From: Podarcis melisellensis
Taxonomy: Eukaryota
Length of the DNA stretch: 64,000 nt
Assembly: GCA_964234715.1 (NCBI GenBank)
Contig: OZ174275.1
Direction: 5' to 3' (one strand)
This document shows positions 41,501 through 63,553 of this stretch, one piece after another; position 1 is the stretch's first letter, and each line of letters begins with the position of its first letter. The translations under genes were made by a program, and so were the position numbers. The notes beneath the pieces are model-generated. The model was not told where the DNA came from, did no database searches, and saw only the letters and a program-made list of their open reading frames with translations.

Positions 41501-44500
41501 CATGATGGAAAAGGACTAGGGTATGTGTGTTCATGCCAAACTTTTCACAGGAAAGGTATGTTTTGAAGGAAATCCAAGAAGGTCTACTTCACACAGGTTT
41601 CCTGGAGAGCAGTTCTAGGCATAAGGGGCAAAAGGGGGTAAAGGGCAGAGTCATCTGAGTTAGCAGGAGAGCTTCAGGCAGTTGAAGGTGGTTGAGCTGG
41701 AGGCACAAAGGCCTTGAGTGGCCATATTTTGGGATAAAAGAGCAAAGAGATGGACCTCTGGGCCTTAATTAGCCGTGTTTAGGGAAGTTTTTAATTTTTG
41801 ATGTTTTATTCTGTTTTTAATTTGATGGGAGCCACCCAGATTGGCTGGGGAAACCCAGCTGGATGGGCAGGGTATAAATAAATTATGATGGTGATGATCA
41901 TGATGATAACAAAATTAAAAAATTCCTTCCAGTAGCACCAGTAGCACCTTAGAGACTAGTAGCACCTTCAGATACATTGAGTGTATCTGCAGAAGTGTGC
42001 ATGTACACGAAAGCTCATACCAATAACAAACTTAGTTGGTCTCTAAGGTGCTACTGGAAGGAATTTTTTTTATTTTGTTTCCACTACAGCAGATCAACAC
42101 GGCTACCTACCTGTAACTAGATGATGATGATGATGATGGAGGGCTAACTAGGGTTCAGGGTCAACCCAATGTATTTTGGAGGTTCAGGCAAAAAAAATAC
42201 ATAAATCCAAATTGTACCTTCCAACGAAAAAATAGATAAATAAAAAGCAGACACTTTGCCACCCTTCAGTGGCAATCCAAGTCTGCTGCCTGAGGCAATC
42301 CACCGCCCCAGCTAATGGTACTGCCAACTGTTCACAACCCACTGCAAGCTTAAGCCACTTAACTCTGCACTGAAGCATAGACTTCATATTCACCGTGTCT
42401 GGCCCAGTCCAGGATTTATTAAAGTCAGGGATCAAATCTGCCATGAATATTATACACTGGTCGCATTTCTCAGCAGGCAACTCAAAGAGAACTCCTTTGA
42501 CTAGGGCCAGCCTGGATGTTCAACAGCCAGTCCTATTGACTGTGTTCCATCTTCACTAGTGGCTGTATTGTAGGTCATTTTAAGGTGAACAAGGTTTTAG
42601 AAAGTATTTATCCTCACACCTCCCTTGCAAAATGTGCCTGTCCCACAGTGATGCAGAGATAAGCACTACAATCCAGGGACACAGACCGAGGTTTTAACTG
42701 AAAACCTTCAACTTTGTAGTTAAAGCATTAGGTTTGTGTTTCCCAAACTTGGGTCTCCAGCTGTTTTTAGACTCCCATTGTCTCTGACCACTGCTCCTGC
42801 TAGGTAGGAATGATGGGAGTTGTCCAAAAACAGTTGGCAACCCAAATTTGTAAAACACTGCTGTAGATTGCCATTCTCACAATTAGGACCTCACTGGAGC
42901 AAACAGAATAGCTATCAGTGCTAAGAGCTGTTACCCATGGGTGTAACCAAGATTTGGGGGTGGGCAGGACTTTTGTTAGGGAGGCAGAACCAATGTGATT
43001 GGTCAGTTAAGTATTTCTATTGTTTTACTTGATCTAGAGGGGCAGCTGCCCCCCTTGGCTATGCCCATGCTGTTGTCTCAGTCCCCATGCACCCCAGTCA
43101 TGTGTTCTGTTAGACAATGCATTTGCCATTTCAAAAAAATCAGAACTCCTCAAACAGGACACTGGCCAGTCACTAAACCACAACTGCAAGCAATCAGACT
43201 TTCAGGTTTCCTTGTCCAGAAGGGAAAGCAATAGCTCCCTGAAACTCCGCACTAGTTTACACTGCATAGTCAGGAAAGTCACAGGAGCATTCCAACAGCT
43301 GAGGGGCAAACCCACAATACAGGCCTCATCGTAATACCGCACATAAAATACAATTGTCTGTTTAACTTCCAGAGTTACACAGATATCGCTTTGCAACTTA
43401 CTTTTCTGGCTCCCCGCCCCCTCCTGAGGAAAAGTAATCACAAACTAAATCAGTGGGGCCTGACAACTGGCCTGGTTTCAGTAGAGTTGTTAGAATTTTC
43501 CATATTTAACTTGTCCCCTGCAGAAAACTTTATGGTTACAATGAGGGAAGAATAATTTATTTGCTAAGGCTGAGAATTTTTAGAAGGATTAAGCAGTGCA
43601 GAAGAAGCGTACCTAAAATATTGACTTCAGCTGGCGCCATCCTTTCTAGAATGCGTAGATTAAGGTTGTTGCCATTGCACAAGGCAAGAAGCAACACCAT
43701 CCTGACTTTTAGATCTCAAGAGCAGAAAAGGATCAGATTCTCTTTTTTGCTTACAAATGGAACCTGGCACCATGGAAGATCTCAAACTAGTTTCACAACC
43801 GTGCCAAGTACTGCACTGTTCTTTGCCTCTTTCCATATATCTGCATCTCAGGTGGAGCACTCCCAAGTTACTTGTGACACTGCTCTCCCCCTTCTCTTTC
43901 CCCAGGGGCTTCAGTGTGACGTCTGGGGGGCAGACCCGTATCTTTAAGCCCATTTCAGTCCAGACCATGTGGTAAGCAAGGCTGTCAGGTAGGGTGAAAA
44001 GCGCAAGGACATGTGTGGGAAAGGATGAATGTGGGGAACAAGGATATAGTTGCCACTATTGCTTTTGGTAGGCTGGGAGAGGGGCATCATGGAGGAAAAT
44101 GGGAAGAGAGATGTGCATTTCTCTGATGGCAGTGGTAGCCTTCAGAGGATTTTTTTAGCGCATCTCTGATGTCTGATTGTCATCTCTGCTCTCAGGTCAG
44201 CGCTGCAAGTGCTGCACAAGGCATGCAGCGAAGCCATCTGCAACAACCATTTCCCAGGAGGCAGTGCGTTGAGCTGGACCGAGTGGTATCAGAAGGCTGT
44301 GAACTCGGAGCAGAGCTGCATTAATGAATGGCTAGCCATGTCCGACTTGGAATCTGTGCGGCCCACTTCTCCTGCAGCCTTCTCTGACCAGTCAGTGATG
44401 GCCCTTCCCCTCCTAGGGCTGGTTATAGGCTGTGAATGATGTAGTCAGCAAAGCTGCAGTGGTTCCAAGGTGGAACTCAATACCATGCAGTAGTCCAAAG

Positions 44501-47135
44501 CACAGACATTTCAGGTGGCCCTGCTAGCCAGTTTTAGGGACTACTGTGCAGAAAGTGCTTCTTCTGTAGGTCATGAAAGGGAAGGGTCCTTGCTTTTGGG
44601 TTTTTTTGTAATAATAAGGGAGGGAGGGAGATGCTGATCAGAGACACAGATCAGAGCAGAAGCCCACCCCAGTTCAGGTCACGTAGCATCACTTTTTGTG
44701 GTGCACTGGAGTGGAGTGGTTTGGGTACCAAACTAGTACTTGAGAGAGACCCAGGTTAACATTCTTACCTAGCCATTGAGTTCACAGGGTGATATTGGGT
44801 CAGTCAGAGCCTAACCTACCTCACAGCAACTTGTGAGGATAAAATTGAGCTGTGGGGGGGAGTAATCCTTAAGGCCCTCAAAGGAAGCTCAGGACATACA
44901 TGCAATAAATGAACGAGCACATTTACAAATGTGTAAAAGATACCTAGGGAAATGCAAAGCTTTGGCATGGTGTCAAGATTTGTAACCCTACTGCCAGTGG
45001 GGGAGGGATGCTCTAGGCATGCCATGGTGTCTGGGGCAGAGTCTGGCGAGCCAAGAGCTTTGCCGACCCTCCGTCTCTGTGCCTCAGGCCGACAGCACAG
45101 GAGATGACAGAGCGGATGATCCGGGCCAAGCTGCGTGAGGTGATGGCCACCACTGACCTGGAGAACATCACCTCCAAGGAGGTGGGATGTTGGGCCAAGG
45201 GGGTGAGGGAGGAGGGGGCGGGGGAGAGAGAATGTGAGGGAATGGAGACGTGTGTGAGGGGGTGTGTGTGAAAGAGAGAGGGTATGGGAGCAAGGTATGT
45301 AAAACAGGGACTGGGAAGGGAATGTGGGAAAGCAGGGGTATGTATAGGGGTTGGAGTGATGGGTGAGGGAAAGGAATGGGCGTGTCATTAAAAAGCAGCC
45401 AGGCTCAAAAGCAACCACAGGCACTCACAAGCTCCCTCCCTCTTCCTGCAGATCCGTACAGAACTGGAGCGGAGAGCCGGTCGGAGCCTGAACGACTATA
45501 AGGAGTTTATTGACAATGAAATGCTTCTCATTATGGCTCAGATGGATCGGCCCTCCAGGATTTTTGACTATCTCTACTTGGTGAGGAAGTACAGGAGAGG
45601 GACCCATGATGCCAGCAGACTGGAGCTCCAAGCCCCTAAAAATGGCAGTCCCTCCTCTCAACTTAAGAGTCCTCAAAATTCTTTCCTGGAATGGCAGGAA
45701 GATGGAAGCCTTGCTGTTATTTTGAGGCCTCCAGGCTTTGCCTTCCCTTCCACCATAAGAGGACGCAAAGCCCCCTGTAAAGCCTCTCCCTTATACTACC
45801 TACAGGGCCTTCTTGAGAGATAGCATGGGGCAGCAGATTTATATTCTTTACTTCATACAAAGTTGAAGATCACAGCAAGCAGCTAAGGCTGCAATTCTAA
45901 ATGGATGGTTTGCACTGAAATGGTTCCATCTTTGGTGGCCATCAGTCTAGCCTCAACAGGTGGTGGAACATACAGAACAGCCTTGGAAGCTGACCTAAGA
46001 AACTGGACAGGCGCTATTAAATTAGTATACCGCCCTATACCTGTAGGTCTCAGGGCGGTTCACAGTTACTCCCTCACATAAAAATCACAACCAAGCACAC
46101 CAGGAAGATGACTCTGCTATCTTTCTATATGCTGGCAGTTTTTCCTGTTGGGGACATATTCAAAACCTCAGTTCCTTCACCTACCCAGTCTGCAATGTTA
46201 TAAGCTAGGAGGGACTCTTCCACATGATTTGGCTAAATTTGTTCGGTTTTGAGTATTTAATGAGCAATTGCAGGATGGCTGAATGTTTGTGAACTATTTG
46301 CACTCGCCTGGGACTGAGCTCTGTGCATGGTGTTGTTCCTTTTTGTCCCAGGGCTCTGAATGGAATGCAGCCAACTTTGAGGAGCTTCAAAGGAACAGGT
46401 ATGTCACCAAAAGATGCTGCTCAGAGAGCAAGACTAGTACCTTCGGGAACTTCATCTGATCTGGATTCCTTGGACACTGAGATGACCATTTGGCACACCT
46501 CTCCATGTAAACTTGCCTTCTAGTCAGAAGGGATTTCTACTATGCATTCCAACCCGACTGAGATACTGAGCAACTGCAGTGGGGGTTGTTTAGGAAATGG
46601 GACATGGTTTAGTTAGTTGAGGCCATGCTTAAAACATGGTGAAAAAGAGCTGCTCACATTCTTGATTACTCCTTGCCTTGCCTTACAGGGTCAGCCACAT
46701 CCTTAATGTCACCCGTGAGATCGACAACTTCTTTCCAGAGCACTTTACGTACATGAATGTCCGGCTCTATGATGAGGAAACCTCACAGCTGCTGCCACAC
46801 TGGAAGGAAACTTACAACTTCATTTCGGCTGCCTGGTGAGAAGTGGACACCAAGGTGGTAGTTGTGATTTCAGCTGCAGCACTTGTGTATTGCAAGCTAG
46901 GCTTACCAACATGGTCCCCAGCTAGTCAATGGGATTGCAGGCACAGAAATGGGCTTTTCAGTGGGAATCCAAGGGCTGAGGTAGAAGAGAAGGGCTCCTG
47001 CCACAAAAAGCCCCCACCTCCCTGAATGAAATGTCAGCTGTTGTTTGAGAGGGCCTGTGATACCAGGTAGGACTGTCAACCTATTCTCTCCTTTCACCCC
47101 AGAATATTTTGTAGGTGAGAATTTGGCACAGCCCT

Positions 47136-47184
<49 letters not shown>

Positions 47185-49583
47185 CCCATCAGACTGGGTT
47201 GCCTCAATACACCCCCTACTTCATTAAGAAGTACGATGCCATCAGTTCCTAGCTTTTGATCTCTGTCAGATTTGACACAGCCAGTTACACGTTTGGAAGA
47301 GCAAGCAGCTGAATTCATCCATCTCCTCCCAGCACCCTAACCACTACACCACACTGGCTGTTGAACAACCATAATGTTTTCCAAGCAGCAATGATAGTCA
47401 CTTGCTTGGATTCATCATGATCACAGCAGAGTGGCCTCAGCATAATATAGCTAATCTGTGCCTTGGCAAGTGTTGAGTTAGGCCAAGAAGCTGGGGTATC
47501 CTACGCTTGGCTGAAGGTACAGCAACTGGATGCTGAATTTCATGACTGTCCTGGGTGATGCTGTAGCCCTGCTTATAGCAAATATTCATTCCCCACAGGG
47601 CGCAAGGCTCTCGGGTGTTGGTGCACTGCAAGATGGGCGTGAGCCGCTCTGGCTCCACAGTGATTGCATATGCCATGAAGGAGTACGGATGGTCACTTGA
47701 GCAGGCCCTTTCCCATGTACGGGAACGACGCCCAATTGTCCACCCCAATCCAGGATTCATGAGACAGCTGGAGCTTTATCAGGGCATTCTGGACGCAAGG
47801 TAAATCCAAGGGGAGGGAGAGCAGGTCTGGTCACTGTGTATGTATGTGGGGAGGGCAAGGGAGACTGATGGGAGCTGCAGCTGACCAGCCTGATCAGACC
47901 ACAGCAGAAGGCTTTGTTTTTATTGTCCAAGAGCCAAACTACATGTTACATGCAACAGCATGATGATCCTCTTAGACTGGAAAATCTACTTTCAGTGGGG
48001 CTATTGGGATCAGAGAAGATCTCCCCTTCCTGGGATTCTAAGCACCTGTGTGCAAAGGCAAACAGGAAAGATTCCGTGTGGAAAAAAATGATGGGGGTGC
48101 CAAAGAGTGGCAAGGAAAAGATCCGGCATCCATGCCATCTGCTCCATTTCCAACTTCCACTCCAAAGCACTTCTTCCAGTTAAAAAGGGCTGTTTCGTAT
48201 TGTTATGCACACGATATTTAATCTTAAACAGGGAGCCACTGATAGCAAAATTGTCCCACATTAATAGTGCAGCAAAAATTAAATAGACATTGTGATTATC
48301 TTTAATATGTGTAATTAATGCTTCTCACTGTAATTCAAAGTCCATTCTTTATTTGGTTCTTTATTTAGCATTCCTTGCTGAATAATCTCTTACATTGTTC
48401 ACCTCATGTTACTACACAGCCGACACAGCAGCCTATGGGAACAAAAGGCAGGAGATGCCCACTCAGAAGATTCTCCAGATATAAGTGATGCCAGCAGTGA
48501 TCCTTCAGGAAGCCCATACTACGAGACTTTAAGCTCAGAAGAAGAACCAGAGGAGCCAGTGACAACCCCCCAGTATTGCTTTCGTCCTTTGCGGGAACCT
48601 CCTGAAGAACCTCACCATCCCGTGGACCCTCCTGATAGTCCCAGGCTCAGTCTTCAGGCCACAGAAGAACCTGGGGCATCGGATGACTCTGGAGCTGAGG
48701 AAGTGCGAAGACACCTGGCTACGATGAGAGTGCCAGAGAAGCCAGCCACGCTCAGACGGGAACGCATCAATCTCTATGCTGTCATGCGCAGCATCAGTGA
48801 AATGGACAGCCCAGAACGCCACATCTCTGTACCAGAGTGTGCTGCTGAGGAAGAGGTAAGAGGGTCATGTAAGGGCATGCTCCCAGAGAGAGGCAAGTGG
48901 AAAGAGTGAGGGAACTTATAATGGAGCCTCAAGGCATACAAGGGAAACAAAAATGGCAATGCATAAATCAGTGGATCTGAAACCTCAGCTAATGCGAAGA
49001 TGAATGGTAGAGGCAGGATGAAGAAAAATCCTTTGTAATTGCTGGCCCTCATTCAGTCTACCTCTTCTTCCTCCAACAGGTATTTCTTCATGATGAAAAG
49101 AAGAAGACTGTGACCTTTGAGCCATTTCCCCAAAATGAAGAGAATTCAGGGTCAGGAACAGACTCTACAGCAAAGGTGCCACTGCCAGAGGAAGAGGAGG
49201 CTCAGGGTCGCAGGGCCAGGCGACGCGGGCGGAGGGCTCACCGGGGACGTCGCCATGTCTGCAAGCAGCTTTCATACTACCCGGCACCAGGCAGGGTGCG
49301 CAAAGTTGTCCAGCGCATGGAGGGCCCTGTCCCATTTGGCCGCAGGCCCGCCTTACAACACCGGCTCTCTGTGGCTCAGCTGGCTGATGCTGCCCTGGTG
49401 GTGAGCCGGGCCAAGGAGTTTGAGGGATACACAGATCCCGAAGGACCAGACAAGCTCCGGTCCCCTTCTCCTCAGGAATCCAAACCTGAGGAAAGCACTG
49501 CCCTCTGTTCTTCCTTGCCCTGCTCCCGGTCCCGGCGGATGGTTCGCCAGGCCAGCGTAGACATGGACCCCAACTCAGGGTGA
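29140..49583 (+). CDS. SSH3: Protein phosphatase Slingshot homolog 3 (SSH-N, DEK-C, dual-specificity phosphatase domain); whole spliced CDS span, 14 exons, 2304 nt = 767 aa
   Basis: join(29140-29205,34132-34169,36508-36697,39674-39792,40985-41056,43906-43971,44196-44390,45088-45181,45452-45580,46352-46398,46689-46835,47599-47799,48420-48855,49080-49583). MALVTV..SP start, catalytic loop [13 protein letters not shown]3-type tail motifs [12 protein letters not shown] and [10 protein letters not shown]. Syntenic with ANKRD13D. Confidence 0.95.
34132..34169 (+). CDS. SSH3: SSH3 exon 2
   Basis: ttgcag|[12 protein letters not shown]|gtaagg; 38 nt, restores phase. Confidence 0.85.
34900..35165 (-). 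mobile_element. Degraded L2-clade LINE fragment
   Basis: Minus-strand peptide [21 protein letters not shown]. Confidence 0.6.
36508..36697 (+). CDS. SSH3: SSH3 exon 3
   Basis: [14 protein letters not shown]...[18 protein letters not shown]. Confidence 0.92.
38345..38809. mobile_element. Tc1/mariner-superfamily (Tc2/pogo-like) MITE with TA target duplication
   Basis: TIRs CTGTATTTTTCGCCCCATAGGA... / ...GTATAGGGCGAAAAACACGG, flanked by TA at 38343-38344 and 38810-38811; internal repeats of cccataggacgcac. Confidence 0.8.
39674..39792 (+). CDS. SSH3: SSH3 exon 4
   Basis: [19 protein letters not shown]...LLGVDFPEE. Confidence 0.92.
40703..40930. mobile_element. hAT-superfamily MITE with 8-bp TSD
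   Basis: TIRs CAGGGGTCAGCAAACT / AGTTTGCCTACCCATG; perfect TSD GACTATAA at 40695-40702 and 40931-40938. Confidence 0.85.
40985..41056 (+). CDS. SSH3: SSH3 exon 5
   Basis: [24 protein letters not shown]. Confidence 0.92.
41910..42120. mobile_element. Penelope-like retroelement end with inverted terminal duplication
   Basis: aattccttccagtagcacc(ttagagac) inverted against gtctctaaggtgctactggaaggaatt; gaaagctcat motif typical of squamate Penelope ends; inserted in a (GAT)n run. Confidence 0.6.
43906..43971 (+). CDS. SSH3: SSH3 exon 6
   Basis: [22 protein letters not shown]. Confidence 0.92.
44196..44390 (+). CDS. SSH3: SSH3 exon 7
   Basis: [13 protein letters not shown]...[17 protein letters not shown]. 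Confidence 0.92.
44705..44850 (+). mobile_element. MIR/CORE-like SINE remnant
   Basis: gagacccaggtt...gggtgatattgggtcagtca..agcctaacctacctcacag..ttgtgaggataaaat. Confidence 0.55.
45088..45181 (+). CDS. SSH3: SSH3 exon 8 (DEK-C)
   Basis: [31 protein letters not shown]. Confidence 0.92.
45452..45580 (+). CDS. SSH3: SSH3 exon 9
   Basis: [43 protein letters not shown]. Confidence 0.92.
46352..46398 (+). CDS. SSH3: SSH3 exon 10
   Basis: [15 protein letters not shown]. Confidence 0.92.
46689..46835 (+). CDS. SSH3: SSH3 exon 11
   Basis: [48 protein letters not shown]. Confidence 0.92.
47139..47184. repeat. (TAA)n microsatellite, about 15 units
   Basis: Direct reading; source of the poly-I and poly-L ORFs. 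Confidence 0.95.
47599..47799 (+). CDS. SSH3: SSH3 exon 12 (catalytic HCxxGxxR loop)
   Basis: [24 protein letters not shown]...[18 protein letters not shown]. Confidence 0.94.
48420..48855 (+). CDS. SSH3: SSH3 exon 13
   Basis: RHSSLWEQK...[17 protein letters not shown]...AAEEE|gtaaga. Confidence 0.9.
49080..49583 (+). CDS. SSH3: SSH3 exon 14 (stop)
   Basis: caacag|[18 protein letters not shown]...[16 protein letters not shown]. Confidence 0.9.
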   Translation, partial: VFLHDEKKKTVTFEPFPQNEENSGSGTDSTAKVPLPEEEEAQGRRARRRGRRAHRGRRHVCKQLSYYPAPGRVRKVVQRMEGPVPFGRRPALQHRLSVAQLADAALVVSRAKEFEGYTDPEGPDKLRSPSPQESKPEESTALCSSLPCSRSRRMVRQASVDMDPNSG

Positions 49584-50261
49584 AGCCCTTGCTGTGGCAT
49601 TTCTCCCTTTCTTCTGTTCATAAGTGGAGTGATAAATGGAGCCCTGAAGGCCAAACAGGTTCACTTCCTATTGTTGGGGGCTTTTTTCCTCTGCCTGAAG
49701 CACTATTGGCAGTTGGTGTGGGAAGTGGCAATTTAAAGCTGCCTGGGAGAAGGGCAGGAAAGAGGAGGAAGGAAGACCATCCCTTTAAGAGACTATAGTG
49801 CTTCACAGGCTCTTCATCTCTTTCCATAGCTATGGAACTGCACTGGGGGGCAACCAGCGCTCTTATGGGGCTCTGTCCCATCCACTTATTGCAGACCTCT
49901 AAATGGCCTTGAAGACTGCACAGCTCCAAGATTTATACTGCAGGCACTTCTGCTTCTTCCTTCAACACACTTTTGATAACACTATCCTTTGTTAAAGCCG
50001 TGGGGGTCCCTGTGGCCTCCCAAGATGTCGCTGGGCTCTTAACTCTCTCCAGCCCTGCCAGCATGGTGAATGGTCAGAGATGATGAGAGTAGTAGTCCAG
50101 CACATGAGGAGGGCTCTGGGCTCCCCACATCCCTGCTTTATGAGGTGGGGCCAGGGAAGTAGTATCTCACTGTGATCATAACCGGGGAAGAAATGCCCCC
50201 TGTTTACTTTTGCACACACATACGCAACCACTGTGCCATTGCCAGCTTCACTCTGCTTGGG

Positions 50262-50267
50262 AATAAA
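50262..50267 (+). terminator. Probable SSH3 polyadenylation signal
   Basis: AATAAA about 680 nt after the stop, with downstream U/GU-rich sequence. Confidence 0.6.
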
Positions 50268-51439
50268 AGAGTTGGTTAACTTTCCACTTGCTGGAACTCT
50301 GGTCTTGTCCTTTTCTTTGAAATGTGTGCCCTAATGCTTGGGACCTAATCTGTGACCACAAACTCGCCTACCTGAGGGAGGGAAACGGGGGACAGTCTTT
50401 TCCTCTGGCTAGGCTACTCAGTATCCACGCAGCTGTGGGGCTCTGTTAAAGACAGTGTGGCTGCGTGGTAATAGCTGGCCATTTGCGTTAGGTGGAACAA
50501 CGGGTCAGTAAAGAATCCCACAACATCTGGCTGTTTGCAGAATCAGTTTTCTGTGGGCCCCTCGATCATGCCGTGAGCTGAGTTTTACCTATGCAGAATG
50601 AGGGCGCAGCTCACCATGTGACCAGTAGAGTGTGCAGACAGCAAAGCACATAGTCACACTCGCCCCAACTTCTCCGAGTGGTGACGAATCCCAGGGAGAA
50701 TTGGCGAGCCTGGTTACATTACACATAAGCATCAGAACCTCTAGCGGAGGGTGGGGAGAAACTACAGTTACCAGCACCCCTTTCGGTCCGCTTCCTGCTT
50801 GCGCCATGGTGTCGTTGCGTAATTTTACGTCGCCGCCATCTCATGCCTGCTAAAAAGAACAGAGCTAGGAACTTAATAGAGTAGCTTGTCTCATTGACAG
50901 ATATGAGGAAGCTGGATGTACATTTTTTTTTGTCTCCAGCTGAAAGCGAGAGCTGCCCTTGGTAATTGACTGTGAGATTCAAGATTTCAGCGTAGTTATT
51001 TACTGAGAAGCAGAACCAGAAAGTATTCAGAGAGACAGCAGCTGATTCAGGCCTTACTTCGCGTGGAAATGAGTGCCCTGCCAGTGCTAGTACAGTCCAA
51101 TATTACAGAGGAGCATGGTTTTCAGCAGCCTTGCAATGTAGAGTCACTGAATGAAGGGTGGAAGCAGGGTTGGGGCTGCCTTAAATTTTCAGGCCAAAGT
51201 CCAATCAGGTTCATAGCGGTCAATGTTTCCCTTTTTTAAAGGGAAATTCCCTTATTCTGAATAGGATTCCTCGCAAGAAAAGGGAAAAGTTGACGTCTAT
51301 GATCGGGTTTCAGTATGAGTGGCACGTCAATTGGATTGTGCCCCTATCAGCTGCACTTCAGAAAAGTTGCGCACAGAAGCTCTGCGTTTACTAACTTGTA
51401 GGCAGAAGAGTTGCACTGTTAAATGTTAAAGCAAGTCTA

Positions 51440-52330
51440 AAATACCGGAAGTAGATCCCTGTATGTCACTCTACACAGTGAAGTCTATGCTACCTAGCGA
51501 GTAACTGTCTCGTTCTCGCCGCTAGGTGGATGTTGAAACAAAACTACCGTGACCATCATGCCCTGCGGCCACGGCAAGGGGGCGGGGACTAGGACACATG
51601 CGCAGAACGCTCTTTCCTTGTTGCTATGGGAGCCTACGGCAGGGCAGCTGCTGGGAAGAGGTAGAATCCGCGTTCTCTTTTGTTCCTCCGCTGCGACGGC
51701 GGCATTTTGGCACCTGTCGCGACTCTTTCCCGGCTGGGGTTTGCGCCGGCGGCGGCCCCTCGTTGCCATGGCGGCGTTGGCGTTGCCTCTCGCGTTCTAA
51801 AGATGCGCCGGGAGACGGCGAGGGAGGCAGCGAGGCCTCCTTCTGGGAGGATGTCGCGTCCGCAGATCATCCACAGCGGCCACTTCATGGTGTCGGAGCC
51901 CCACGCCGACCCGGACCCGGACCCCGAGGCGGCTCTGAGCCAGCCAGGCCAAGGCGCCCCGCCGAGCGCGGCGGAGCGAGCGAGAAGGGCCGGCTCCGCG
52001 CGGAAGGCCGCGGCAGGGAAGGCTGGTGACGGGGCCCAGCTGGCCTCCGCCGCCGCCGCTTACGACTTCGACACGGTGGACGAGGCCGCGTGCCTGTGCT
52101 ACCGCTACGGGCCTCGAAGCAGCGGAGCCCTCAGCATCGACCCTTCGCTCACGAAGCTCTTCGAATGCATGACGCTCGCCTACAGGTAAGGGCGGGGCGG
52201 GGCGGGCGGGGCAGCCCCCGAGCCAACGGGGGCAGCGGGAAGTGTGTGTCTGGGGGGAAGGGATAGAGAAGGGCCCGCCCGGAGGCTGCCTTTCTTGCCT
52301 CCGGCCCTTGCCTCTCGGGATGCATTCAGG
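51440..52330. promoter_or_regulatory. CpG island promoter of the Mondo-family gene (ETS CCGGAAGT 51445-51452; X-box-like GTTGCTATGGGAGC 51620-51633 and GTTGCCATGGCGGC 51762-51775; GC-box array at the start of intron 1)
   Basis: CpG-dense region over exon 1; motifs read directly from the sequence. Confidence 0.75.
51803..52185 (+). CDS. Mondo-like exon 1 (MCR1, MCR2/NES)
   Basis: ...MSRPQIIHSGHFMVSEPH...YDFDTVD...SIDPSLTKLFECMTLAY|gtaagg. Confidence 0.88.
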
Positions 52331-55300
52331 GAACCAGACTATGCCTTGGGAACTGCAGCACGACCAATTAGCCTGCCATTCATACGCAAGATATACTAGT
52401 ATGCATGCAGATAAACGATACTAATAAGAGAATCCAAATGCAGGTAACTTGGCATCGTTAAGTAAAAGCCTCGGATTCCTTGTAACTACAGACATAAAAG
52501 AAATTTTCACCCAAGGAGGCATTTCAAAGGCGCGGCTTGTCTTGTCTGCCATGCCAAGTTGAAATCTAAATGAGTGTATAAATCTAGATTTGTAGCTGCC
52601 AGTTAAGAAGTGCTCCCCTACAATCTTTCCTTCCACTTTAAGAACTTCCACTTATGAGAGGGAGGTTCTCACGCATCACGTGTGAGAACAGAGTAGTCAA
52701 GGAACGAAACTGACATTTTAGAGTCAGAAACGCATACATCTGTTGAAACCAACAAATCCAGTTTTGTAGTTAAAAAAAAGCAGGGGGCCTAGATATGACA
52801 TAGAGTTGTGCCTGGTTCTCCAGCATTCTACTACCACTTGCTTTCTGGCACAGTATTATTTATTTACTCACTCTGGTTGCAGTTCTACATACAAGGGATT
52901 AGAATCAATGAATAAGTCTCATTGAACTCCGTAGGAGTTACTTCTGAGAAAAGGTGCAGAGGATTGCACTGCTACTTATTTTACTGTATTTGCAAGGTGC
53001 CCAATAGCGTCTCTAGTGGCATATGGGAATATGTTCATATAAGCATAGCATAGAGGAGGGGAACTGACACTAACTTTAGTCTTCCCAGAAAATCATGTCA
53101 GAAAAGCACATTTTGCTGCTTAGACAGTGCTTCTGACCCATACATATTACTTTGGTTTTTATCTACCCCATTTTCAGTGTATCTCATACCCCAGTTGACT
53201 TGTTCATTAAGCTGTCAAGTCCTTTAATCTTTAATCAGCTCTCAGGTCAGACTCCTTTAATGTGTGGAAAGGAGAGAAAGTCTTAAATAATAGAAATTTC
53301 TATTTGACAGAGTGTAGTGGATAGATAGTTATCATGAGTATTAAAGTGAGAAATGGACCATGACCCAAGTTGTCCCTGCCAGATGCTAGAGACATAATAT
53401 CAAAAAGCTGTCTGGGTTATGTGGGATTAAATATCATAAAGTATATCCACTGTGGTAAAGGTCTGTTTTGTCCCCTTTCTGATAGTAGTGTTGCTAAAGC
53501 ATAAAAACTTGGCAAATTATATAAACAGGAAGTTTTCACAGGACATGTATTTCTTCCTGTGCTCCCTTTAGCTTCTTAATAGAATTTTAATGTGAACTCT
53601 TGTGTAGAATTTTAATGATTTATGTTAAGGAACTAATTGGCTTGTTTTGCACAATCTAGTTTTAATTATTGTTACCTGTGCTGTACTACGTTGAAAATTA
53701 ATACATGCCCTGAATTTTTTGAATTGGTTGCCCCCCGCCCCAACGTTTCTGTGAAGTAGGAAAGAAACTTGAGCAATGAAACAGGCTGCTTAGGGAGGTA
53801 ATGAAATTTGCTTCGTTGGAAACTTTCAAAGAAAGGCTGGGTGGGCAACTCTATGGAATGTTTTAGATTACTGTGCTTCAGGGCATAACTTGGACTAGAT
53901 TAGGGATCAAAAACTTGCAGTCTGCTCGCTGCATATGGCACCCAGAACACTTGATTGCTGGCTGTGTGCCTCTTAAAGTTTAGAAATTCTAGTGTTTCTT
54001 TTTTTAAAGTAACATTTGACATGATTGCATAGACCATTTTGGACATGTGATGGTAACTCACTTTTCTGGTTCTTGGTGCAAACAGCCTATCCTGCACTGG
54101 TCTTGACCTTTGGGATTTCTCCTAGTTGTAAAAATAATTAAGATAAAAAGTACCACACTGTTTTAACCAGTATCCCTTTCCCAGGAATGTCTGGCCTTGA
54201 TGTTAGCATATAGAGTTTTGAATTAAATAGCTGTAGTCCTTTCATATACAAGTTGTATTCCTCCCAGAGTTGCACATTCAGCAGTATGTTGCAGACTAGC
54301 TTCCCAACCAATATATTTGCTGCAAAATTACTGCTTCTGCCATTGAGATCATCTCCTTGTAAATATATATCTATGAAGCAGCTTTAAATCAAGAAAAAAA
54401 AGTGTCCCAGCATTGTCAGCAACCTAGTGAACTGGAATAGATCCGCAGACCTGGGTTTTTTGGGTCGGTTCTTTGACTTCCAGCATTATGACATTTCAGA
54501 CGTTGACTCGTTTAGGTATTTTCTAGTTAATCTCCCACAACATTATGAGATGTCATCTTGGACTAAGCAAAAGGACAAAGGTAGTATGAGGAGTTTGAAT
54601 GCCTGAAGAAATCCCGGCAACAGAGTCCTTTTTGACATTAACTTTGTCAAAAGCTCAGTTTACCATATACCTGAGCCCACTGGTTTCAGTGGCAGTGCAA
54701 GCCTCTGCCCCCAGCCAGTGAAATAGACATTACATTTTGCTCAGTAGTAACAGAGAATCATATATTGAATCTTTTTCACAGCTATGCATTAGAACTGTGA
54801 CTGATCTATCTGCCTGGGATTATTCATTATTCATTCTGTCTCAAGCAGGTGCAATTTTGAATAAGAAGCTGTTGTGGCAGAATAGCAAAGGGGCATGGGT
54901 TCTGAACAGTATCTTGTTTGTTCTTTTACACAACTGTTCAGTGAAACAGCTGCCATGTTTGAAATGTAATGGGGCAGAGTCCAATAGGGTGGCATGAGAG
55001 TGTGGTCCAATACGCTTAGTGTGAGGATTTTCATGTGGGATGTTTGTGCACCTTCAAGTGAACTTCTGAAGGGCAGAATATGAGTGTGTGTTGCTACTGA
55101 TTAAACAGGGTGTGTGGGTGGAATGCAAGCTGCCAGTGTCTGCCTGTATTCCTAAGGAGATGCTGGCTCATTATAATTTCTTCTCCTTCGTAAGAACATA
55201 CAGATGAGGCACAGTTTTACTTTAGCAGTGGAAGAAATAAACCATTGAATTAACCTTCCAAGATGTTTTTAATCATTTGGATTACTCAAGTCAATACTAT

Positions 55301-58300
55301 ATTTCTCTGTTGTAGAGATACACTCACTAACAAATTGGTTATTAATAGCAAAACACAAATCATTTAACTGGATGTGTTTTAAATTATGCTGCATTTCTTC
55401 AGAATAATTGAATTACCTTAGGTTTTGTCCAGGAAATAGTTGTCCAGCACTCACCGACTCTTCGTAGATGGGGTTCTGCAACAATAATGAATGGGGAAGA
55501 CCCCTTATAGTAAGGCTGGGAGTGGGGGTTATTTCCAGATCTGCCACCTAAAGCCAGGGCTATTTTTTCTTCTGTCATAATTGCCACATGGAATTCCACC
55601 CCAAGGCTGGTATCTATAGCGTACTTTTTAAAAGCAAGATTTTGTCCTTTGTTGAGGAGCTTCATCAGAAAAACAGGAAGGCAGTATACATAGAGAGCCA
55701 TGTAGTTCTGTGGGCAGAGCTTCTGTAATCAACACAGCTTCTTATCACCTCTATAATTATGTTCTACACTTATCAGCATATGCTACTTCTAACCTGTTCA
55801 TTTTTCTCCTTCTCCCACAGTTTGCTCTAAAAAGTTGAGGAGGAATCAACATCCAGTGAGAGGTTTAGAATAAAGCAGGCATATTGGGTCAGTCTGTGCA
55901 AAAGGTGAACATTTGTAGACATCTGAGTAGTTTATAGTTTTGAGTGCAGAATTTAGTTTTTTTGGCACAGATTAGTAATAAAGTGTGGCTATAGAATAGT
56001 CAAGCTTATTAAAGAGATGTTCCCGTTCAGTGTGTTTTGAGCTGCCTTCTTCTTCTTTGGGTGTTGCCTGGCCCTGTTTCCCCTTGAAAGCCAGATATAC
56101 TTGGTATTACAAGAGGGGTTTTTTTGGCTTTCTCATTTGTAGTGAGAAACTTGTCTCTCCCAAATGGAAAACCTTCAAAGGGCTGAAACTGCTACAGCGT
56201 GACAAGATTCGACTCAATAATGCCATCTGGAGGGCCTGGTATCTGCAGTGTAAGTAGCCTGGAAGAAGGTATTTAAAACACAACAACAAAAAACCCAACC
56301 ATATAAAAGGTGATCTGATCTGGGCAGATTAGGTGGGAAGCACCAAATTCTGTGTATAAATTCACAAAAAATGGGTTCTTCCTCCATCCCTACACGTGTT
56401 TTCCATGACTTCCTCAACCAAGGAGACTGTTTCACACAGAATTATGTATTGCAAGTTTGCAAAGCTTTATGCTAGCAAAAGTCACATATTAATTGCTTAT
56501 GGATTTAAAGCTCTTCAGCTCTACTGCCTTATTTAGTGGATGCTGAAATGGGAGCGACTGCCAGCCAGCCAGCAAGTATTTTCTCTGTTTGGTCCTGCTT
56601 GAAGCTGTGCTGCAGATTACAGCCCCTTTTCTGCTATTTCATTCTGGATGCAGATGTGGAGAAGCGGCAGAACCCAGTGTGCAGTTTTGTGACCCCACTA
56701 GAGTGCAGTGATGTAGATGTGCACCGCAAGCCTGAGGTGAGCAAAGGTTACTTGGGCCTTTCTTACTTAAGAACGTACAAAGAAGACAGATTACACATTT
56801 CTGTAAGTGACCCCTGGCTGCACCTTTATTTGGCAGGCTGTCATCATGGAAGGAAAGTACTGGAAACGCCAAATTGGGGTTGTCATCAGGGAATATCACA
56901 AATGGAGGTTGTTTTCCTATACCCAGGTAAGGGTCTTCTCCAGCAAGATGTGTTGTACTTCATATAGCTTCCCTTCACCCCTAGATGACATGTTCCACCC
57001 AAGCTCATACAGTCCTTTTTAGTGTCAACCAAGGAAATCAGGTAGCCAGTCCAGAAGCACCTTGGTACTCCATTGTAAGAAGGTGGATTTTCTAGATGCT
57101 TCTTGCCAGGCTATCATAGACTGGATCTGTTGGTTATGAGGTGATCTGGTACTAGACTGGCGAGGCTACATTTCTGTCTTACTCTGATGGGTGCCTTGGC
57201 CTATAGACTCATTTCCGCAGCTGCCAAAGGCTCTCATTCTCTTGCCCTCTCTCTCACTTCCACAAAGACACACACTGGTCACCCAGCTATCCCTGTGTGA
57301 TTATTGTGGTCCGCGATGGCTTTCTGAGGCCTCAAGTGTTCATTGTTGTTGTTGTTGTAGTAGTAGTAATAGTACATTATACCTAGCCCTTCCTCCCAAA
57401 TGTGTCCAGGGCAGCAATGAGCCAGATAGGATTTTATTTAGCCACCTATGGTTTTTCTCTAGCTAAGTATTGTAATTGTAGTACTTTCAGTGGCCTAATC
57501 CTAAACATTCTGTGCATTTTTTTATAGGCTTCAAAGAAGATGGATAAACCCGTCTATGGTTCAGCTCAGGTGCTATTTTAATGCCTTGTTCCTATACTGC
57601 ACCCTCCAGATTCCCCTTTCCCCATGGCAGAGGGTGGAATTAAAAACGCTTGGGGGTTGTCCGCAGCCATTCAGTATTCCAGCCCCTCATTTGAGTTTGC
57701 CTAAAGTTGGAGTTCACAGCTCTTTCTCTCCCATTCTGGACAGGAAGTAGCTGATGATGTTCCAAGGGCAGAGCTGAAAACGGATGGAACAGATGCATGC
57801 CCCATGGACCTTGACCCCTTGCATGACCTGGATGCACTTCTGGACACCTTCATTTCTAGCCGCAACCCTTATGGTGGCCCCAACCTCCGTGGCCTTGGTG
57901 AGAGGCCTTGCTTTGTGCTCATTCCATCTATCTCTGGATCTGTCCCTTTCTACCAAGAAACCCTTTAAGTTTTCTCCACTGTCCCCAGAGGCTAGTACAG
58001 ATGCCTCTAGAGGGTGGAGAGAGGTTTTGAAGTATCTCCATGTGAGAGCCAGTCCCTTGCTTGTGAACCAGAGAACAATTCTTTGCTATGGAACAAAGTA
58101 GCGAGCGAGTGATATTATTTCTCATTTTGTGTCTTCAGCTCACCAGGGAAATGCAGATATGATCCAGCCCACCCTGACCCAACTGCACCCCATCTTTGGG
58201 GAGGAGTTTATGGACTTGGACCCCATTCAAGGTAACAACAGAGGTTTATATGGCTGTACTTAGTGGTAAGGTGGCGCATCTCAAAGCTGAAAGACATCCT

Positions 58301-61300
58301 CTGAAGCACTTTGTATGGCTTCTTAAGACCACTCCAGACTGTGTTTAAATTATGTATCCATACTGTACACACTTGAAAGAATTCCGTTTGTTTATAAATG
58401 CTACTGAGTACATGCTGCTAGGATCTCCTGATCAGCTGCAATTCCCTGCAGTGCTTATCTGTAAAAGAGCCCTTGGATTCCTCAGAATTGCAGCTTGCAT
58501 ATTTACTAAACTCACTGTTAGGGAGAAAACTGAAAAGTGTGTCATTAAAGCCCAAAAATCAAATAGAAACATTTATTATTATTATTTTAAGCCCACAAGT
58601 TAATCACCAGTTTTGAAAGATTAACTTGTGACCTCAAGAGTAAATAACATCTGAGTCTGGGTCACCAAAGTGGGCTGAAAGCTGTCACTGGTGAGAGGAG
58701 ACTATTTCCAAACTGACATTGATGAAATTCTAGTTCACCCAAGGCCAGAGCAGAATGCTGCTGAGCAAACATGATACGTCCTGGTAAGGCTAGACATTAT
58801 TTAAATCAGTCAGCATGCACGTAAAAATCCTCTTTTGGGCGTCCAGTGCTCTAAGAGAAGACTCATTCTCCATATAATCACATGCATACTGTGCTTTATA
58901 TATTGTTTGTCCCCTATCCCATTTTCTGAATCAGCCAGGACAAATTCTTCAGAGCCACTGTTTATCCCCTTTTCACAGGAAGAATAAAGTAGGCAAATTA
59001 ATCTTGTATGAATTCTTAATTTGAAAAATCTTAAACTTACGAGTTGGTCATCTCAAAATTTCTACTTGCAAGTATAGCATCTACATATTGAGCCTATTTC
59101 AGTCTCATTTCTGCCACTCCGACACATAACTCTGAAATCAGCAGTCCCCACCTGCATATTGCTCCAGTTCTTGACTTGAGTTTCTCTACCAGTTGAGATA
59201 TCCTGGATTTTAGGTCTCATCTTTCTTCGAAACCACCAATTGATGTCTTCTTGTATGGTGGATGTGAATGAATGAATGTTTATTATTACGACCAAACAGC
59301 CAGCATGCTACCTGTATGGTGAAATCCTGATGATTCCTTGCTTTGTTGATTCAGACACACCAGCCAGTTATCTTCTGCCAGTTGCTCTTTATCTCCTCCC
59401 AGCCTTTTAAATATTTGCTTTCTTTTCACAGAATTCATCAATTCCTGTCGTTCTCAGCCCATGAACCAGGTAAGGAGAATAAATTTATCTGATAGCTTAC
59501 AAACTCCTTGGGCTTTTGCAGCCCCTGATGCTTACTGCAGATACTGGTCTGTGCTTGATTTTGATTTTGGAAAGGCAATAGCCTTTTTCAGCATTGGGGA
59601 AAAAAAATGAGCAGTGGGAGTTCCCCACTTGTATAATTTTCAGTGCAGCCATCTCCAGCCTGGACTCAGGAGTTGTGTTTGATTTGCACTCTCTTCTCCC
59701 CCCTCTTAGGCTCCTGCAGTAACGGATACTAGTGCTTTGAACCAGTGCAACTCAGATACACCTCTCATTGCCCCTGGGACCAAGGATCTCCCACCGCCTG
59801 GAGACTCTCTCAACCCCATTCCCATCTCACTGGATGTGGAGCCGCCTGTACCTTTGAATGGACAACAGACCTTCCTGCCATTCTTCCCCACCTCCCCACT
59901 GAGGATCAGCCCGCCGCCTGTCTCTCCCATCTTGCGCATGCAGCCTCAAACCACTTTGGTCTTCTCTGTCATCACGCACACAGGATCAGAAACAAATTCT
60001 CCGTCTGTATTTCGGGACACTTTTGCTGTGCCAGTCTCTGCTCCTCCACCCAAGGATGGGAAATGCAGACACCTGCAACGGATTGCTCCAGCACCCTCCT
60101 CTAGCCAGCAGCCAACCCTTCCCGGTGCTCCGCTCCCCTGCCTGCTTGCAACTGGTATGTCCCTGCAAGGACAGGCTCTCCGTAGGGGAAATTGAGGCAT
60201 TGCTGACCTAGACTACAATGCTTCTCTAGGTCCATTTGGAGTTTTAAGTCATACTGCAGAATTCTCCTTTCTTTTTGGTTGTTGTTTTCTGAAGCAAATC
60301 TCACCAGGATCAACTTTTGGAATCCCTAATTTAAACAACTGCATGCATTATTAGTGTTTATTTTGATATAATTATCTGAAGTTGGAGTTTAGCTTCATAC
60401 TTGGGAATCACTGGAAGCAAAAGCATTTTTCTGTACTGGAAAAATAAAATATGTGGTCCAGGGAGATAGTTTTTTGTGTTACTGCAGAATTTTAAAATTA
60501 TATACAGTGGTACCTCGATTTTCGAATGTAATCTGTTCCAGAAGACCGTTCGAGTTCTGAAACATTCGAAAACCGAAAACTCAGTATAGAAATTTTTTGA
60601 TGTGGTTTATTTATTGTTTATGACTTTTGTAATTATGTAAATCTTGTTATGCTGTAAGCCGCCTTGAGCATTGGAAAGGTGGCATACAAATTAAAAAAAT
60701 GATGAAGAATTGAGTATGGAAAACTCAATACAGAAGCCGCGTGGCATGTTCGACTTCTGAGGCATGTTTGAAAACCGAAGCATTTATTTTCGGGTTTCCG
60801 ACGTTCAAAAACTGAAATGTCTGTCAACGGAGACGTTCAAAAACCAAGGTACCACTGTATCTGACTTGAGCTGATAGGCATTACGTAACAGTGCCTGTAT
60901 CTCCTTCAGTGGATTTAGGGTTTAGCCTTGCAGAAATTGTGTGTCAAAACTATGTACTGACTAGTCTGTAGAATAGTAAAATGGTTAGTCCACAGGTATT
61001 GGAGACGGATTTAAGGTGGCATTCTTACTTGCAACTATACATATGTGTAAAGATGTCTGGGAGCTGCTGTTTGGAAAGGGAAAGAAAAAGTCCACTATGT
61101 CCAGATTCCTGCTTTGATCCCCTTCTTGCTTCTCTGGAGTGTAGTTCAGCTTTTTGTTTTGATGCAGCCAGCAGTTTGAACCAGGTAAATCAAGCAAAAC
61201 TGCAAATGTCAACATTCGTCCAAATGCTTCACAGTTAAACAGAAAACCTTCAACTCATTAGTAGAAGTGAAATGACAGCTCATTAACATAACTATGCATA

Positions 61301-63553
61301 TTTACTAGCTTTTTAAAGTTATATTTTAATTTTTCTTAGATCTACAAGTGAGCACAGATTTTCTTGACCCATTTCAGAACAAGGCTCTTGTGCCTTGTAG
61401 CTTTTTTGAACGGGGAAAGTTGTCAAGAGCTGTAGAGTCTTCTAATGTGCAAGCATTATGAAGAGAGAATCTGTAACTATGAAACTTTCCTCTCTACTCC
61501 ATTTAAAACTCACACATAAAGGTCCAGAATTCCTATCCTCGTGTGTCTGGTGGCAAAGTGGGTACCAAACAGTTGGTGTCAGATTGGCTGGTACATGCAG
61601 GAATTTTATGAGACGCTAATGGTTATGGGGAAACCAGGCCTAGGTATGTTTTGGAAGGGATCCCTGAGGCAAGGATGCTCATTGGCCTCTCTGTTGGGTA
61701 AGGTGCCATGCATTTAAGTAGAGATTATTGGCCCGAATTGTATTTTCAGTTGTGGTGGGTGGGATTTCATAAAGCAGCAGACTCCTTTTCATTAAATAAA
61801 TTCTGCCACATTCAAAAACTTGGTCTACTGGTGAGCAGCTAATCTGAAACTGTGTAGTTACAGGGAGTGAGTGGTGCTGCTTCAGCCAGCCAAGTTTTGT
61901 ACATGCATTGGGGGTTAATACATAGAGGCTGGGAAAATAAGAACATCTCTTTCATCTCTAGGTCCTGCCCCACTGCCCCTCACTCCAGTCATGAACTCTG
62001 TGCAGGTAAGGATGCTCTCCTCTGCCACCTTCCGTCTGCGAGGCCTCCTATCTGTGTTCTGCTTTTTGCCTCCTTGGAGTTGACAGGCGGCGTATTTTTC
62101 TATCTTTCTGTTTGGCTGCTCTCTCTTTCTCTCAACCCTGCTTTTCCTCTTCCACAGGTGTGTGGCTTCCCAAAGCCCCCTGCGAATATGCTGAACTCAT
62201 TCTCGGCAACGGTGAAGTCTCCTCCGCTTGCCTCTGCTGCTGCTTCCCCTGACACTGGTAAGCTGGCTCAGGAGGGTGCAAAGTCACTTGGCCTCTCTTC
62301 TTAGCAATACCTCATCCACTTTCACTGGATTGGTCTATATGCCGTGCCAAAGTAGAAATTGAATACACACCTTAAGAGGAACTCACCTACCACAGTATTT
62401 TTGGGATTATTTCAGGTGCCAAAACCAAGGAGAGAGCTGAGGACAACACTCTCTGCAAACCCCAGGAAGTGGACAAATGCTGTACTGCCAAGGTAATAAG
62501 GATACCCACACCACTGTACCCCATCTTGTTGGCTTGAGCATTGTGGGAGAAGGCATCTTTTCTCAAAGACGATAGCCAAAGGGGTAGTCACCTGGCAGTG
62601 TCTCAAATCATGGCTTGATTGGCTCTTGCAGGGAAGTCGCAGATCAACACTTACCTCGGCTGACTATGCCCGCCGTAGGGTCATCAGCTCCGGCTTCAAC
62701 ACTCTTGCCACTCTGGTGTTGACAGGACCTGATCAAAGCAGCACTAAGGTACGCATCCCCCACTGTACCAGAGGGTGGAAGGGCACATATTCTTTGCTGT
62801 TTGTCCAGTCCTCCCAATTTGCTTTGTGAACCTGCTGGAGCCATTCTTGTGGTCTTTGCCTTCCCAATCCATTTTACACCTTTACTCTACCCCCTCACCT
62901 CCCCAGTTCAGCAAAGCGATGCTCCTGCAGAAAAGTGCGGCACATGTGGAAAGACTGCAGCAAGAGCGCCGACAAGCTCAGGAGACAGTTGAAAGACTAC
63001 GTGGGGAAATCAAAGAGCTGAGCACTGCCATTGAGTGAGTTGCGGGGCTGGCTTAAGGGGTTTTCATTGGATCAGGGATACAAGTTAAAAGGTGAGAGGG
63101 GAACTCCTGTCAACAAGTTGTGGCTTTTCTCTTCCCTGCAGTGACTTTCAGCGCCAGCTTCCACCTACGGGAGCTCCTGTGCTGCCACCACAGTCAGATC
63201 AGGCTTCTCAACTCTATGAAGAGTATGTGCGCAAGCGCACCCTGCAGGACTGGCGCTTCTGGCTTGTATCCACCAGCGAGCATGTGGGATGGGATGGGAC
63301 AGGTTAGGGTGCAAGAAAGCAAGCCAGGGGAGGCATTTGGCATGGCATTAGTGGCCTGCTGGGTGCTTAAGGGGAGCAGGGAGACTTGGCTGCATAGGCT
63401 CCTTAACCTCTTCCAACCTGCAGTTCAGCATGGTGATTAAGCCACTCTTTGAGAGCTACACCAGGACAGTGAGCACAGGCAATGTCAAGGAATTCTGCGA
63501 CTCAGTGTTGAGCTGGTTGGAGCAGCACTGCACCCTGCCCATCTTGCGCCCTG
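51803..63553 (+). CDS. Mondo-family (MLXIP/MondoA - MLXIPL/ChREBP-like) bHLH-ZIP protein, probable third paralog; 16 exons seen (about 718 codons), final exon beyond the window
   Basis: join(51803-52185,56143-56249,56654-56736,56837-56926,57528-57569,57744-57897,58139-58231,59432-59469,59710-60154,61962-62005,62158-62257,62416-62492,62632-62748,62907-63034,63142-63265,63424-63553), open throughout. MCR1 QIIHSGHFMVS, MCR2 IDPSLTKLFECMTLAY, MCR3 KLVSPKWK..RDKIRLNNAIWRAWY, MCR4 EGKYWKR..IREYHKWR, MCR5 GNADMIQP, bHLH-ZIP, and DCD/WMC FWLFSMVIKPLFESY..WLEQHCTLPILRP. The start could instead be the ATG at 51851. Confidence 0.92.
56143..56249 (+). CDS. Mondo-like exon 2 (MCR3, 14-3-3-binding helix)
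   Basis: SEKLVSPKWKTFKGLKLLQRDKIRLNNAIWRAWYLQ|gtaagt. Confidence 0.93.
56654..56736 (+). CDS. Mondo-like exon 3
   Basis: YVEKRQNPVCSFVTPLECSDVDVHRKPE|gtgagc. Confidence 0.92.
56837..56926 (+). CDS. Mondo-like exon 4 (MCR4)
   Basis: AVIMEGKYWKRQIGVVIREYHKWRLFSYTQ|gtaagg. Confidence 0.92.
57528..57569 (+). CDS. Mondo-like exon 5 (small)
   Basis: ttttatag|ASKKMDKPVYGSAQ|gtgcta; 42 nt, phase 0/0, position matches the small exon 5 of Mondo genes. Confidence 0.65.
57744..57897 (+). CDS. Mondo-like exon 6 (MCR6 region)
   Basis: EVADDV...PMDLDPLHDLDALLDTFISSRNPYGGPNLRGL|gtgaga. Confidence 0.8.
58139..58231 (+). CDS. Mondo-like exon 7 (MCR5)
   Basis: AHQGNADMIQPTLTQLHPIFGEEFMDLDPIQ|gtaaca. Confidence 0.9.
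59432..59469 (+). CDS. Mondo-like exon 8 (small)
   Basis: tttcacag|EFINSCRSQPMNQ|gtaagg; required to convert phase 1 to 0. Confidence 0.75.
59710..60154 (+). CDS. Mondo-like exon 9 (proline-rich region)
   Basis: APAVTDT...FSVITHT...QRIAPAP...CLLAT|gtatgt. Confidence 0.82.
60505..60857. mobile_element. Tigger/pogo-like MITE with TA TSD and a probable nested retroposon 3' tail (about 60590-60700)
   Basis: TIRs CAGTGGTACCTCGATTTTCGAA / TTCAAAAACCAAGGTACCACTG with TA on both sides; repeated ttcgaaaaccga units; internal AT-rich ...tgtaagccgccttgagc..gaaaggtggcatacaaat segment. Confidence 0.8.
61962..62005 (+). CDS. Mondo-like exon 10 (small)
   Basis: tctctag|GPAPLPLTPVMNSVQ|gtaagg; phase 1 to 0. 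Confidence 0.7.
62158..62257 (+). CDS. Mondo-like exon 11
   Basis: Long pyrimidine tract, ccacag|VCGFPKPPANML...SPDT|gtaagc. Confidence 0.75.
62416..62492 (+). CDS. Mondo-like exon 12
   Basis: tttcag|GAKTKERAEDNTLCKPQEVDKCCTAK|gtaata; phase 1 to 0. Confidence 0.7.
62632..62748 (+). CDS. Mondo-like exon 13 (degenerate basic region, helix 1, loop)
   Basis: GSRRSTLTSADYARRRVISSGFNTLATLVLTGPDQSSTK|gtacgc. Confidence 0.88.
62907..63034 (+). CDS. Mondo-like exon 14 (helix 2 and leucine zipper)
   Basis: FSKAMLLQKSAAHVERLQQERRQAQETVERLRGEIKELSTAI|gtgagt. Confidence 0.92.
63142..63265 (+). CDS. Mondo-like exon 15 (start of DCD/WMC)
   Basis: DFQRQLPPTGAPV...YEEYVRKRTLQDWRFWL|gtatcc. Confidence 0.92.
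63266..63423 (+). other. U12-type (minor spliceosome) GT-AG intron
   Basis: 5' splice site GTATCC; perfect U12 branch site TCCTTAAC at 63400-63407, 16 nt before the end of the intron. Confidence 0.8.
63424..63553 (+). CDS. Mondo-like exon 16 (DCD/WMC)
   Basis: FSMVIKPLFESYTRTVST...WLEQHCTLPILRP|gtatgg. Confidence 0.92.

Follow-up and report, generated by a model that had tools for sequence, protein, structure and literature searches.

MondoC, an overlooked third Mondo paralog of vertebrates that lacks His5 and Glu9 in the basic region of nearly all tetrapod orthologs

Animals sense glucose at the level of transcription mainly through the Mondo-Mlx pathway. According to two surveys of the family, vertebrates possess exactly two Mondo genes (PMC3177325, PMC4766361), and a zebrafish study reported single orthologs. 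The question here is what kind of gene lies downstream of SSH3 in Podarcis melisellensis, where a 64,000-nucleotide stretch of contig OZ174275.1 (assembly GCA_964234715.1; hereafter the window, which is free of N) contains an open member of this family at a locus of neither MLXIP (MondoA) nor MLXIPL (ChREBP or MondoB). The analysis described below identifies this gene, denoted here MondoC, as a third vertebrate Mondo paralog, a conclusion that we regard as nearly certain, and shows that its sugar-sensing module (MCR1-6), helix-loop-helix, leucine zipper and DCD remained under constraint while His5 and Glu9, two of the DNA-reading residues of the basic region, were lost on the tetrapod stem.

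Within the window, MondoC spans positions 51851-63553 and consists of 16 exons, all with GT-AG introns and agreeing phases, as established by reading the sequence and by scripted splicing. The spliced model (start 51803 or 51851, end 63553) comprises 718 codons without a single stop, so that the open multi-exon Mondo gene proposed in an earlier note on this DNA is borne out. That note placed the start at 51803; the ATG at this position is in frame but is not conserved across amniotes, and the conserved start is the ATG at 51851. The coding segments are as follows.

51851-52185, plus strand: coding exon 1 (MCR1 and MCR2 with the nuclear export signal, NES); the in-frame upstream ATG is at 51803
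56143-56249, plus strand: exon 2 (MCR3, 14-3-3-binding helix)
56654-56736, plus strand: exon 3 (first half of MCR4)
56837-56926, plus strand: exon 4 (second half of MCR4; the KKRL basic cluster of MondoA and ChREBP is replaced)
57528-57569, plus strand: exon 5
57744-57897, plus strand: exon 6 (MCR6 region)
58139-58231, plus strand: exon 7 (MCR5, GRACE); RNA-like contigs and alignment
59432-59469, plus strand: exon 8; junctions in RNA-like contigs
59710-60154, plus strand: exon 9 (proline-rich); junctions in RNA-like contigs
61962-62005, plus strand: exon 10; junctions in RNA-like contigs
62158-62257, plus strand: exon 11; junctions in RNA-like contigs
62416-62492, plus strand: exon 12; junctions in RNA-like contigs
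62632-62748, plus strand: exon 13 (basic region, helix 1, loop); junctions in RNA-like contigs
62907-63034, plus strand: exon 14 (helix 2, leucine zipper); RNA-like contigs and alignment
63142-63265, plus strand: exon 15 (end of the zipper, DCD); RNA-like contigs and alignment
63424-63553, plus strand: exon 16 (DCD); RNA-like contigs and alignment

The orthologs from a skink, an agamid and the emu have 17 coding segments, the layout of the Mondo family (PMC4766361); the window holds 16 of these, and the last one, about 40 codons long in Podarcis, lies beyond it. Introns 1-6 agree with the exon layout of the orthologs. Introns 7-15, among them the two that flank exon 13 with the basic region, are joined exactly as in the model in contigs from four sequencing runs of related organisms, which are likely RNA because the spliced joins fall at GT..AG; the expression check proposed for this gene thus had a positive outcome. 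A possible micro-exon at 61168-61184 was discarded, given that the RNA contigs splice 60154 straight to 61962. The same intron 9 holds a repeat element (60500-60860) at which many unrelated contigs pile up.

In the phylogenetic tree, which was built from 476 conserved columns and did not include the basic region, the vertebrate Mondo proteins, MondoC among them, form a clade (support 100/100) that splits into three clades with support of 100 each, namely MLXIP with the shark sequences, MLXIPL with those of ray-finned fish, and MondoC. The MLXIP clade including sharks is recovered at 100/100 without MondoC, and the MondoC clade (100/99), in which lungfish branch first and amphibians are included, broadly follows the species tree. 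Approximately unbiased (AU) tests reject the nesting of MondoC within bony-vertebrate MLXIP (p 7.7e-5) and within lobe-fin MLXIPL (p 1.4e-8); the placements of MondoC as the sister of MLXIP, of MLXIPL or of both are not separated (AU p 0.23 and 0.29, none preferred), and the lamprey and hagfish genes have no settled place relative to the three clades. All three proteins are present in the ostrich, the pig-nosed turtle and Microcaecilia, and Anolis carolinensis and Pelodiscus have MondoC besides the canonical Mlxip and Mlxipl listed in the tables of Singh and Irwin.

These data bear directly on another alternative, that the gene is MLXIP or MLXIPL moved to a new place or copied in one lineage, or else a pseudogene in decay. 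The plain name "MLX-interacting protein" attached to it in some databases (for Pogona, Anolis carolinensis and Chelonia) and its long branches could be taken in this sense; the tree and the same-species triples nevertheless refute a copy. As for a pseudogene, apart from the open frame and the spliced RNA, pairwise dN/dS (the ratio of nonsynonymous to synonymous substitution rates, NG86 method) among the window gene and its skink, agamid, turtle and emu orthologs is 0.25-0.37 overall, well below the value of about 1 that the earlier note had named as adverse. The corresponding regional values for the same five species are 0.05-0.17 for MCR5/6, which carries GRACE and is the most constrained part of the protein, 0.13-0.28 for the bHLH-zipper and 0.11-0.34 for the DCD. 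MondoC is under purifying selection, and the alternative can be set aside as extremely improbable. The emu gene (retrieved locus 10001-18744) is open, with Asn at basic-region position b9 and changes at otherwise conserved positions, so that selection on MondoC may be relaxing in ratites.

The position of MondoC in the tree dates its split to the interval between the divergence of the invertebrate chordates and the jawed-vertebrate crown. An origin as an ohnolog of the early vertebrate genome duplications, which the earlier note proposed, is plausible in that it fits the tree, the split predating the parting of sharks and bony fish.

The principal feature of MondoC, which the earlier note omitted, is found in the basic region. 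Numbered in the register aligned against Max, this region reads as follows.

62638-62676, plus strand: basic region b1-b13, with Leu at b5 (62650-62652) in place of His, Asp at b9 (62662-62664) in place of Glu, and Arg-Arg at b12-b13

Positions b5, b9 and b13 contact bases and are nearly invariant across the Max/Mlx network (PMC3177325), and every bHLH protein that binds the CA core has Glu9, except for the bHLH-PAS proteins, which read other half-sites (PMC8431614). Among 45 tetrapod MondoC orthologs (a single one for each species), 44 have Asp at b9 and the emu has Asn; b5 is His in a single species and Phe in 31; Arg12 and Arg13 are present in all 45, and Ser7 in 40. By comparison, Glu9 is kept in each of the 293 MondoA, ChREBP, cyclostome and invertebrate sequences scored, and the basic region of ChREBP is canonical in 127 of 127. 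The class B signature His5-Glu9-Arg13, which in the window gene has become Leu5-Asp9-Arg13, is found within MondoC only in lungfish: two lungfish proteins retain His5 and Glu9, with b10-b11 already changed. Because lungfish keep both residues, the loss is shown to have been fixed once, on the tetrapod stem. In the lungfish Protopterus annectens, two adjacent models (P0245 and P0464), labeled MLXIP-like and ChREBP-like, are apparently the two halves of one MondoC gene. The notion of a mosaic sequence, with a MondoA-like NES and a ChREBP-like start of the basic region, did not hold: the NES is ancestral sequence that also occurs in invertebrates, and Thr at b4 is found in only 16 of the 45 orthologs. 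In many bird MLXIP models (e.g., P0197), the basic region is one residue short, with His-Leu/Ile-Ser-Glu in place of His-Ile-Ser-Ala-Glu, a deletion that is possibly real in some birds.

The rest of the protein retains the full complement of Mondo domains. In line with the earlier prediction for MCR1-5, bHLH-ZIP and DCD, these regions and MCR6 all align with MondoA and ChREBP, with per-region identities of 42-87%; most are about equidistant from the two, and MCR2 and MCR5/6 are nearer to MondoA. The HLH of the Podarcis ortholog scores above the Pfam cut-off, and the zipper heptads and the DCD are intact. MondoC shares with MondoA the 17-exon layout, MCR1-6, the NES, the 14-3-3 helix, bHLH-ZIP and DCD, but belongs to a separate clade at a separate locus, is about 38-43% identical to it over the aligned blocks, begins directly at MCR1, keeps a long loop that is shortened in tetrapod MondoA, and has a basic region without His5 and Glu9. 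With ChREBP, likewise a separate clade, it has the same domain set and a similar loop length in common, and differs in the erosion of the MCR4 basic cluster: amniote MondoC has lost the KKRL at the end of MCR4, which lies within the import signal region of ChREBP (PMC3323566).

From the conserved domains alone, we infer that MondoC would form a heterodimer with Mlx and have glucose-dependent activity. It is predicted to pair with Mlx and 14-3-3 and may respond to glucose-6-phosphate; the MondoC:Mlx dimer would be unable to read the CACGTG box or the carbohydrate response element (ChoRE), and MondoC would then titrate Mlx, the one partner that all three would share, away from MondoA and ChREBP, so that sugar-induced transcription would be damped. 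We give an even chance to this proposal, under which MondoC would be an Mlx-binding antagonist, a natural dominant negative of the Id kind. The glucose response of hepatocytes is blocked by a ChREBP mutant engineered in its basic region (PMC1761440). Prolines occur within b3-b6 in amphibian and ratite MondoC, and the net charge of the basic region is about +2.6, down from +3 to +5; the prolines and the lower charge would favor a shortened, capped helix. In the structural comparisons, exon 13 alone gave nothing meaningful in the PDB and, in a domain search, only a weak HLH match; a single-sequence fold (predicted local distance difference test, pLDDT, 55) was too poor to use; and an alignment-based model (pLDDT 79.6) contains canonical rows and hence is no guide to the basic helix.

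Id proteins are small and wholly lack a basic region. Like these HLH antagonists, MondoC would combine an intact dimerization domain with loss of E-box reading and is predicted to occupy a shared partner; unlike them, it retains Arg12-Arg13, the zipper, the DCD and the full sugar-sensing module. No Id-like antagonist of the Mlx network was described in the literature that we found.

Three observations weigh against an antagonist. The dominant-negative ChREBP was changed at R673/R674, probably b12-b13, where MondoC keeps both arginines. Asp9, Arg12 and Arg13 have hardly varied over some 350 million years, a constancy that could reflect contact with DNA rather than helix capping. Finally, constraint is strongest on the GRACE activation region, for which a purely sequestering protein has no obvious need. 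The constancy of Asp9, Arg12 and Arg13 and the conservation of GRACE, together with the prevalence of Ser7 and Phe5, are what a retargeted factor would lead one to expect: MondoC:Mlx would occupy an asymmetric site, in which Mlx reads CAC and MondoC recognizes a new half-site, and would activate sugar-responsive genes of its own. Such retargeting would parallel the pairing of HIF, SIM and AHR with ARNT; bHLH-PAS proteins that lack Glu9 recognize non-canonical half-sites (PMC8431614), and the change of b10-b11 already in lungfish suggests a stepwise shift in specificity. These partners of ARNT (HIF-1a, SIM, AHR) resemble MondoC in the non-Glu b9, the kept Arg13 and the canonical partner, but their domain context is unrelated and their DNA binding is demonstrated, whereas that of MondoC is hypothetical. 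The free variation of b1-b6 with tolerated prolines, the possible fit of Ser-x-Asp to a helix N-cap as well, and the erosion in amniotes of the MCR4 cluster tied to nuclear import all speak against retargeting, which we consider a serious but rather unlikely possibility.

It is less probable still, and in our view distinctly doubtful, that MondoC is a weak and partly redundant Mondo that occupies ChoREs through Mlx and two-dimer cooperation and acts on the same genes with lower activation. Two heterodimers do cooperate through the Mlx loop (PMC1761440), all the regulatory domains are retained, several lineages can do without the gene, and its evolution is 1.6 to 5 times faster than that of MLXIP and MLXIPL over the same species pairs. 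Redundancy, however, would not hold a fixed Glu-to-Asp change invariant, and little affinity is predicted with both base-reading residues lost.

Whichever function applies, the species range of MondoC is wide. Database searches were run with single exons or database proteins as queries. The search with exon 1 retrieved full-length relatives, and the window protein is 97.5% identical to that of Podarcis raffonei. With a Phrynocephalus query, the MondoC block scores 506-1462 bits and canonical MLXIP at most 476, one MondoC fragment lying among the latter. The block comprises squamates, the tuatara, turtles, a crocodile, the ostrich, the emu, caecilians, salamanders and one unassigned transcript, which is probably from a lungfish because its best match is Protopterus (73%). 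The earlier statement that the gene was retained in reptiles is thus correct but too narrow, given its presence in amphibians, ratites and lungfish. Among the matches listed, the MondoC group includes no mammal, frog, teleost, shark or coelacanth protein; this absence is suggestive for mammals, because an intact ortholog should score above MLXIP in the Phrynocephalus search, and weak for fishes. From such absence alone, we infer a loss in mammals. An extra zebrafish Mondo mentioned in the earlier note found no support, in that no teleost ortholog appears among the matches listed and no paper on it was found. In a neognath bird, the king vulture (retrieved locus 10001-14448), in-frame stops are present and the helix-2 and zipper exons are gone, with the Asp9 motif still visible; this relic shows a loss under way. 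A short "MLXIP-like" model of the shark Heptranchias perlo has a ChREBP-like exon 1 and no neighbors within the range looked at; no shark ChREBP is among the top matches listed.

Taken together with the basic-region data, this distribution leads us to propose, tentatively and with slightly less than even confidence, that tetrapods ancestrally had an antagonist (possibly sugar-gated) or retargeted member of the Mondo-Mlx network, which would have arisen through the Glu9-to-Asp change in a third ohnolog, would survive in reptiles, ratites, salamanders and caecilians, and would have been lost independently in mammals and neognath birds. If this is true, the loss altered the strength of the sugar drive on lipogenic and glycolytic genes in the latter two groups. 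Of the DNA-reading residues of the Max/Mlx network, the most conserved one carries a fixed change in MondoC, which amounts to a natural experiment, yielding either an endogenous brake on sugar signaling or a Mondo with new targets, and lungfish MondoC with His5 and Glu9 offers a ready control. The patchy loss allows differences in sugar handling among reptiles, birds and mammals to be compared with the presence of the gene.

As the earlier note anticipated, MondoC carries only automatic labels, usually "MLX-interacting protein-like" and at times "MLX-interacting protein" or "ChREBP-like", and an Atlas look-up returned only generic Mondo clusters. We found no description of a third vertebrate Mondo in a literature check that was incomplete, some of the searches being uninformative. 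With neither a name nor a dedicated study found, MondoC is an overlooked gene; a third Mondo extending from lungfish to lizards corrects the two-gene picture and accounts for the mislabeled reptile "MLXIP" models.

The gene also has a CpG promoter of its own, as predicted, with the following elements.

51250-52500, no strand: CpG island over the promoter and exon 1 (CpG observed/expected 0.87-1.02, GC up to 0.72)
51541-51633, plus strand: promoter module with ACTAC-type, CATGCG and X-box-like (51620-51633) elements, conserved in skink, agamid, turtle, emu and vulture
51762-51775, plus strand: second X-box-like element, conserved in skink, agamid and turtle

We take these elements to be ZNF143/THAP11-like, NRF1-like and RFX X-box-like, respectively; the two X-box-like elements hint at possible expression in testis or ciliated cells.

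The nearest upstream gene is SSH3.

44194-50267, plus strand: 3' part of SSH3 (stop 49581-49583, poly(A) signal 50262-50267), with Pfam matches to PH_SSH1-like and DSPc and collinear with emu and agamid

Its poly(A) signal at 50262, which skink and agamid share, lies about 1.5 kb upstream of the first MondoC ATG, the distance given in the earlier note. SSH3 and POLD4 flank MondoC in skink, agamid, emu and king vulture; in the loggerhead turtle, MondoC lies ahead of POLD4, and in the emu, GLYATL and a CLCF1-like gene come next. In human, POLD4 comes after SSH3. On the same bird microchromosomes we take SSH1/ANKRD13A to accompany MLXIP and SSH2/ANKRD13B to accompany MLXIPL, so that MondoC may lie in a block paralogous to theirs, as an ohnolog would. 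Farther upstream in the window, an ANKRD13 domain is detected by a Pfam match in a block collinear with emu, and the last exon of GRK2 (2218-2388) was identified by reading alone. An intron of ANKRD13D contains, as judged by eye, a reverse-transcriptase-like fragment of a long interspersed nuclear element (22400-23060, minus strand) with a poly-T end.

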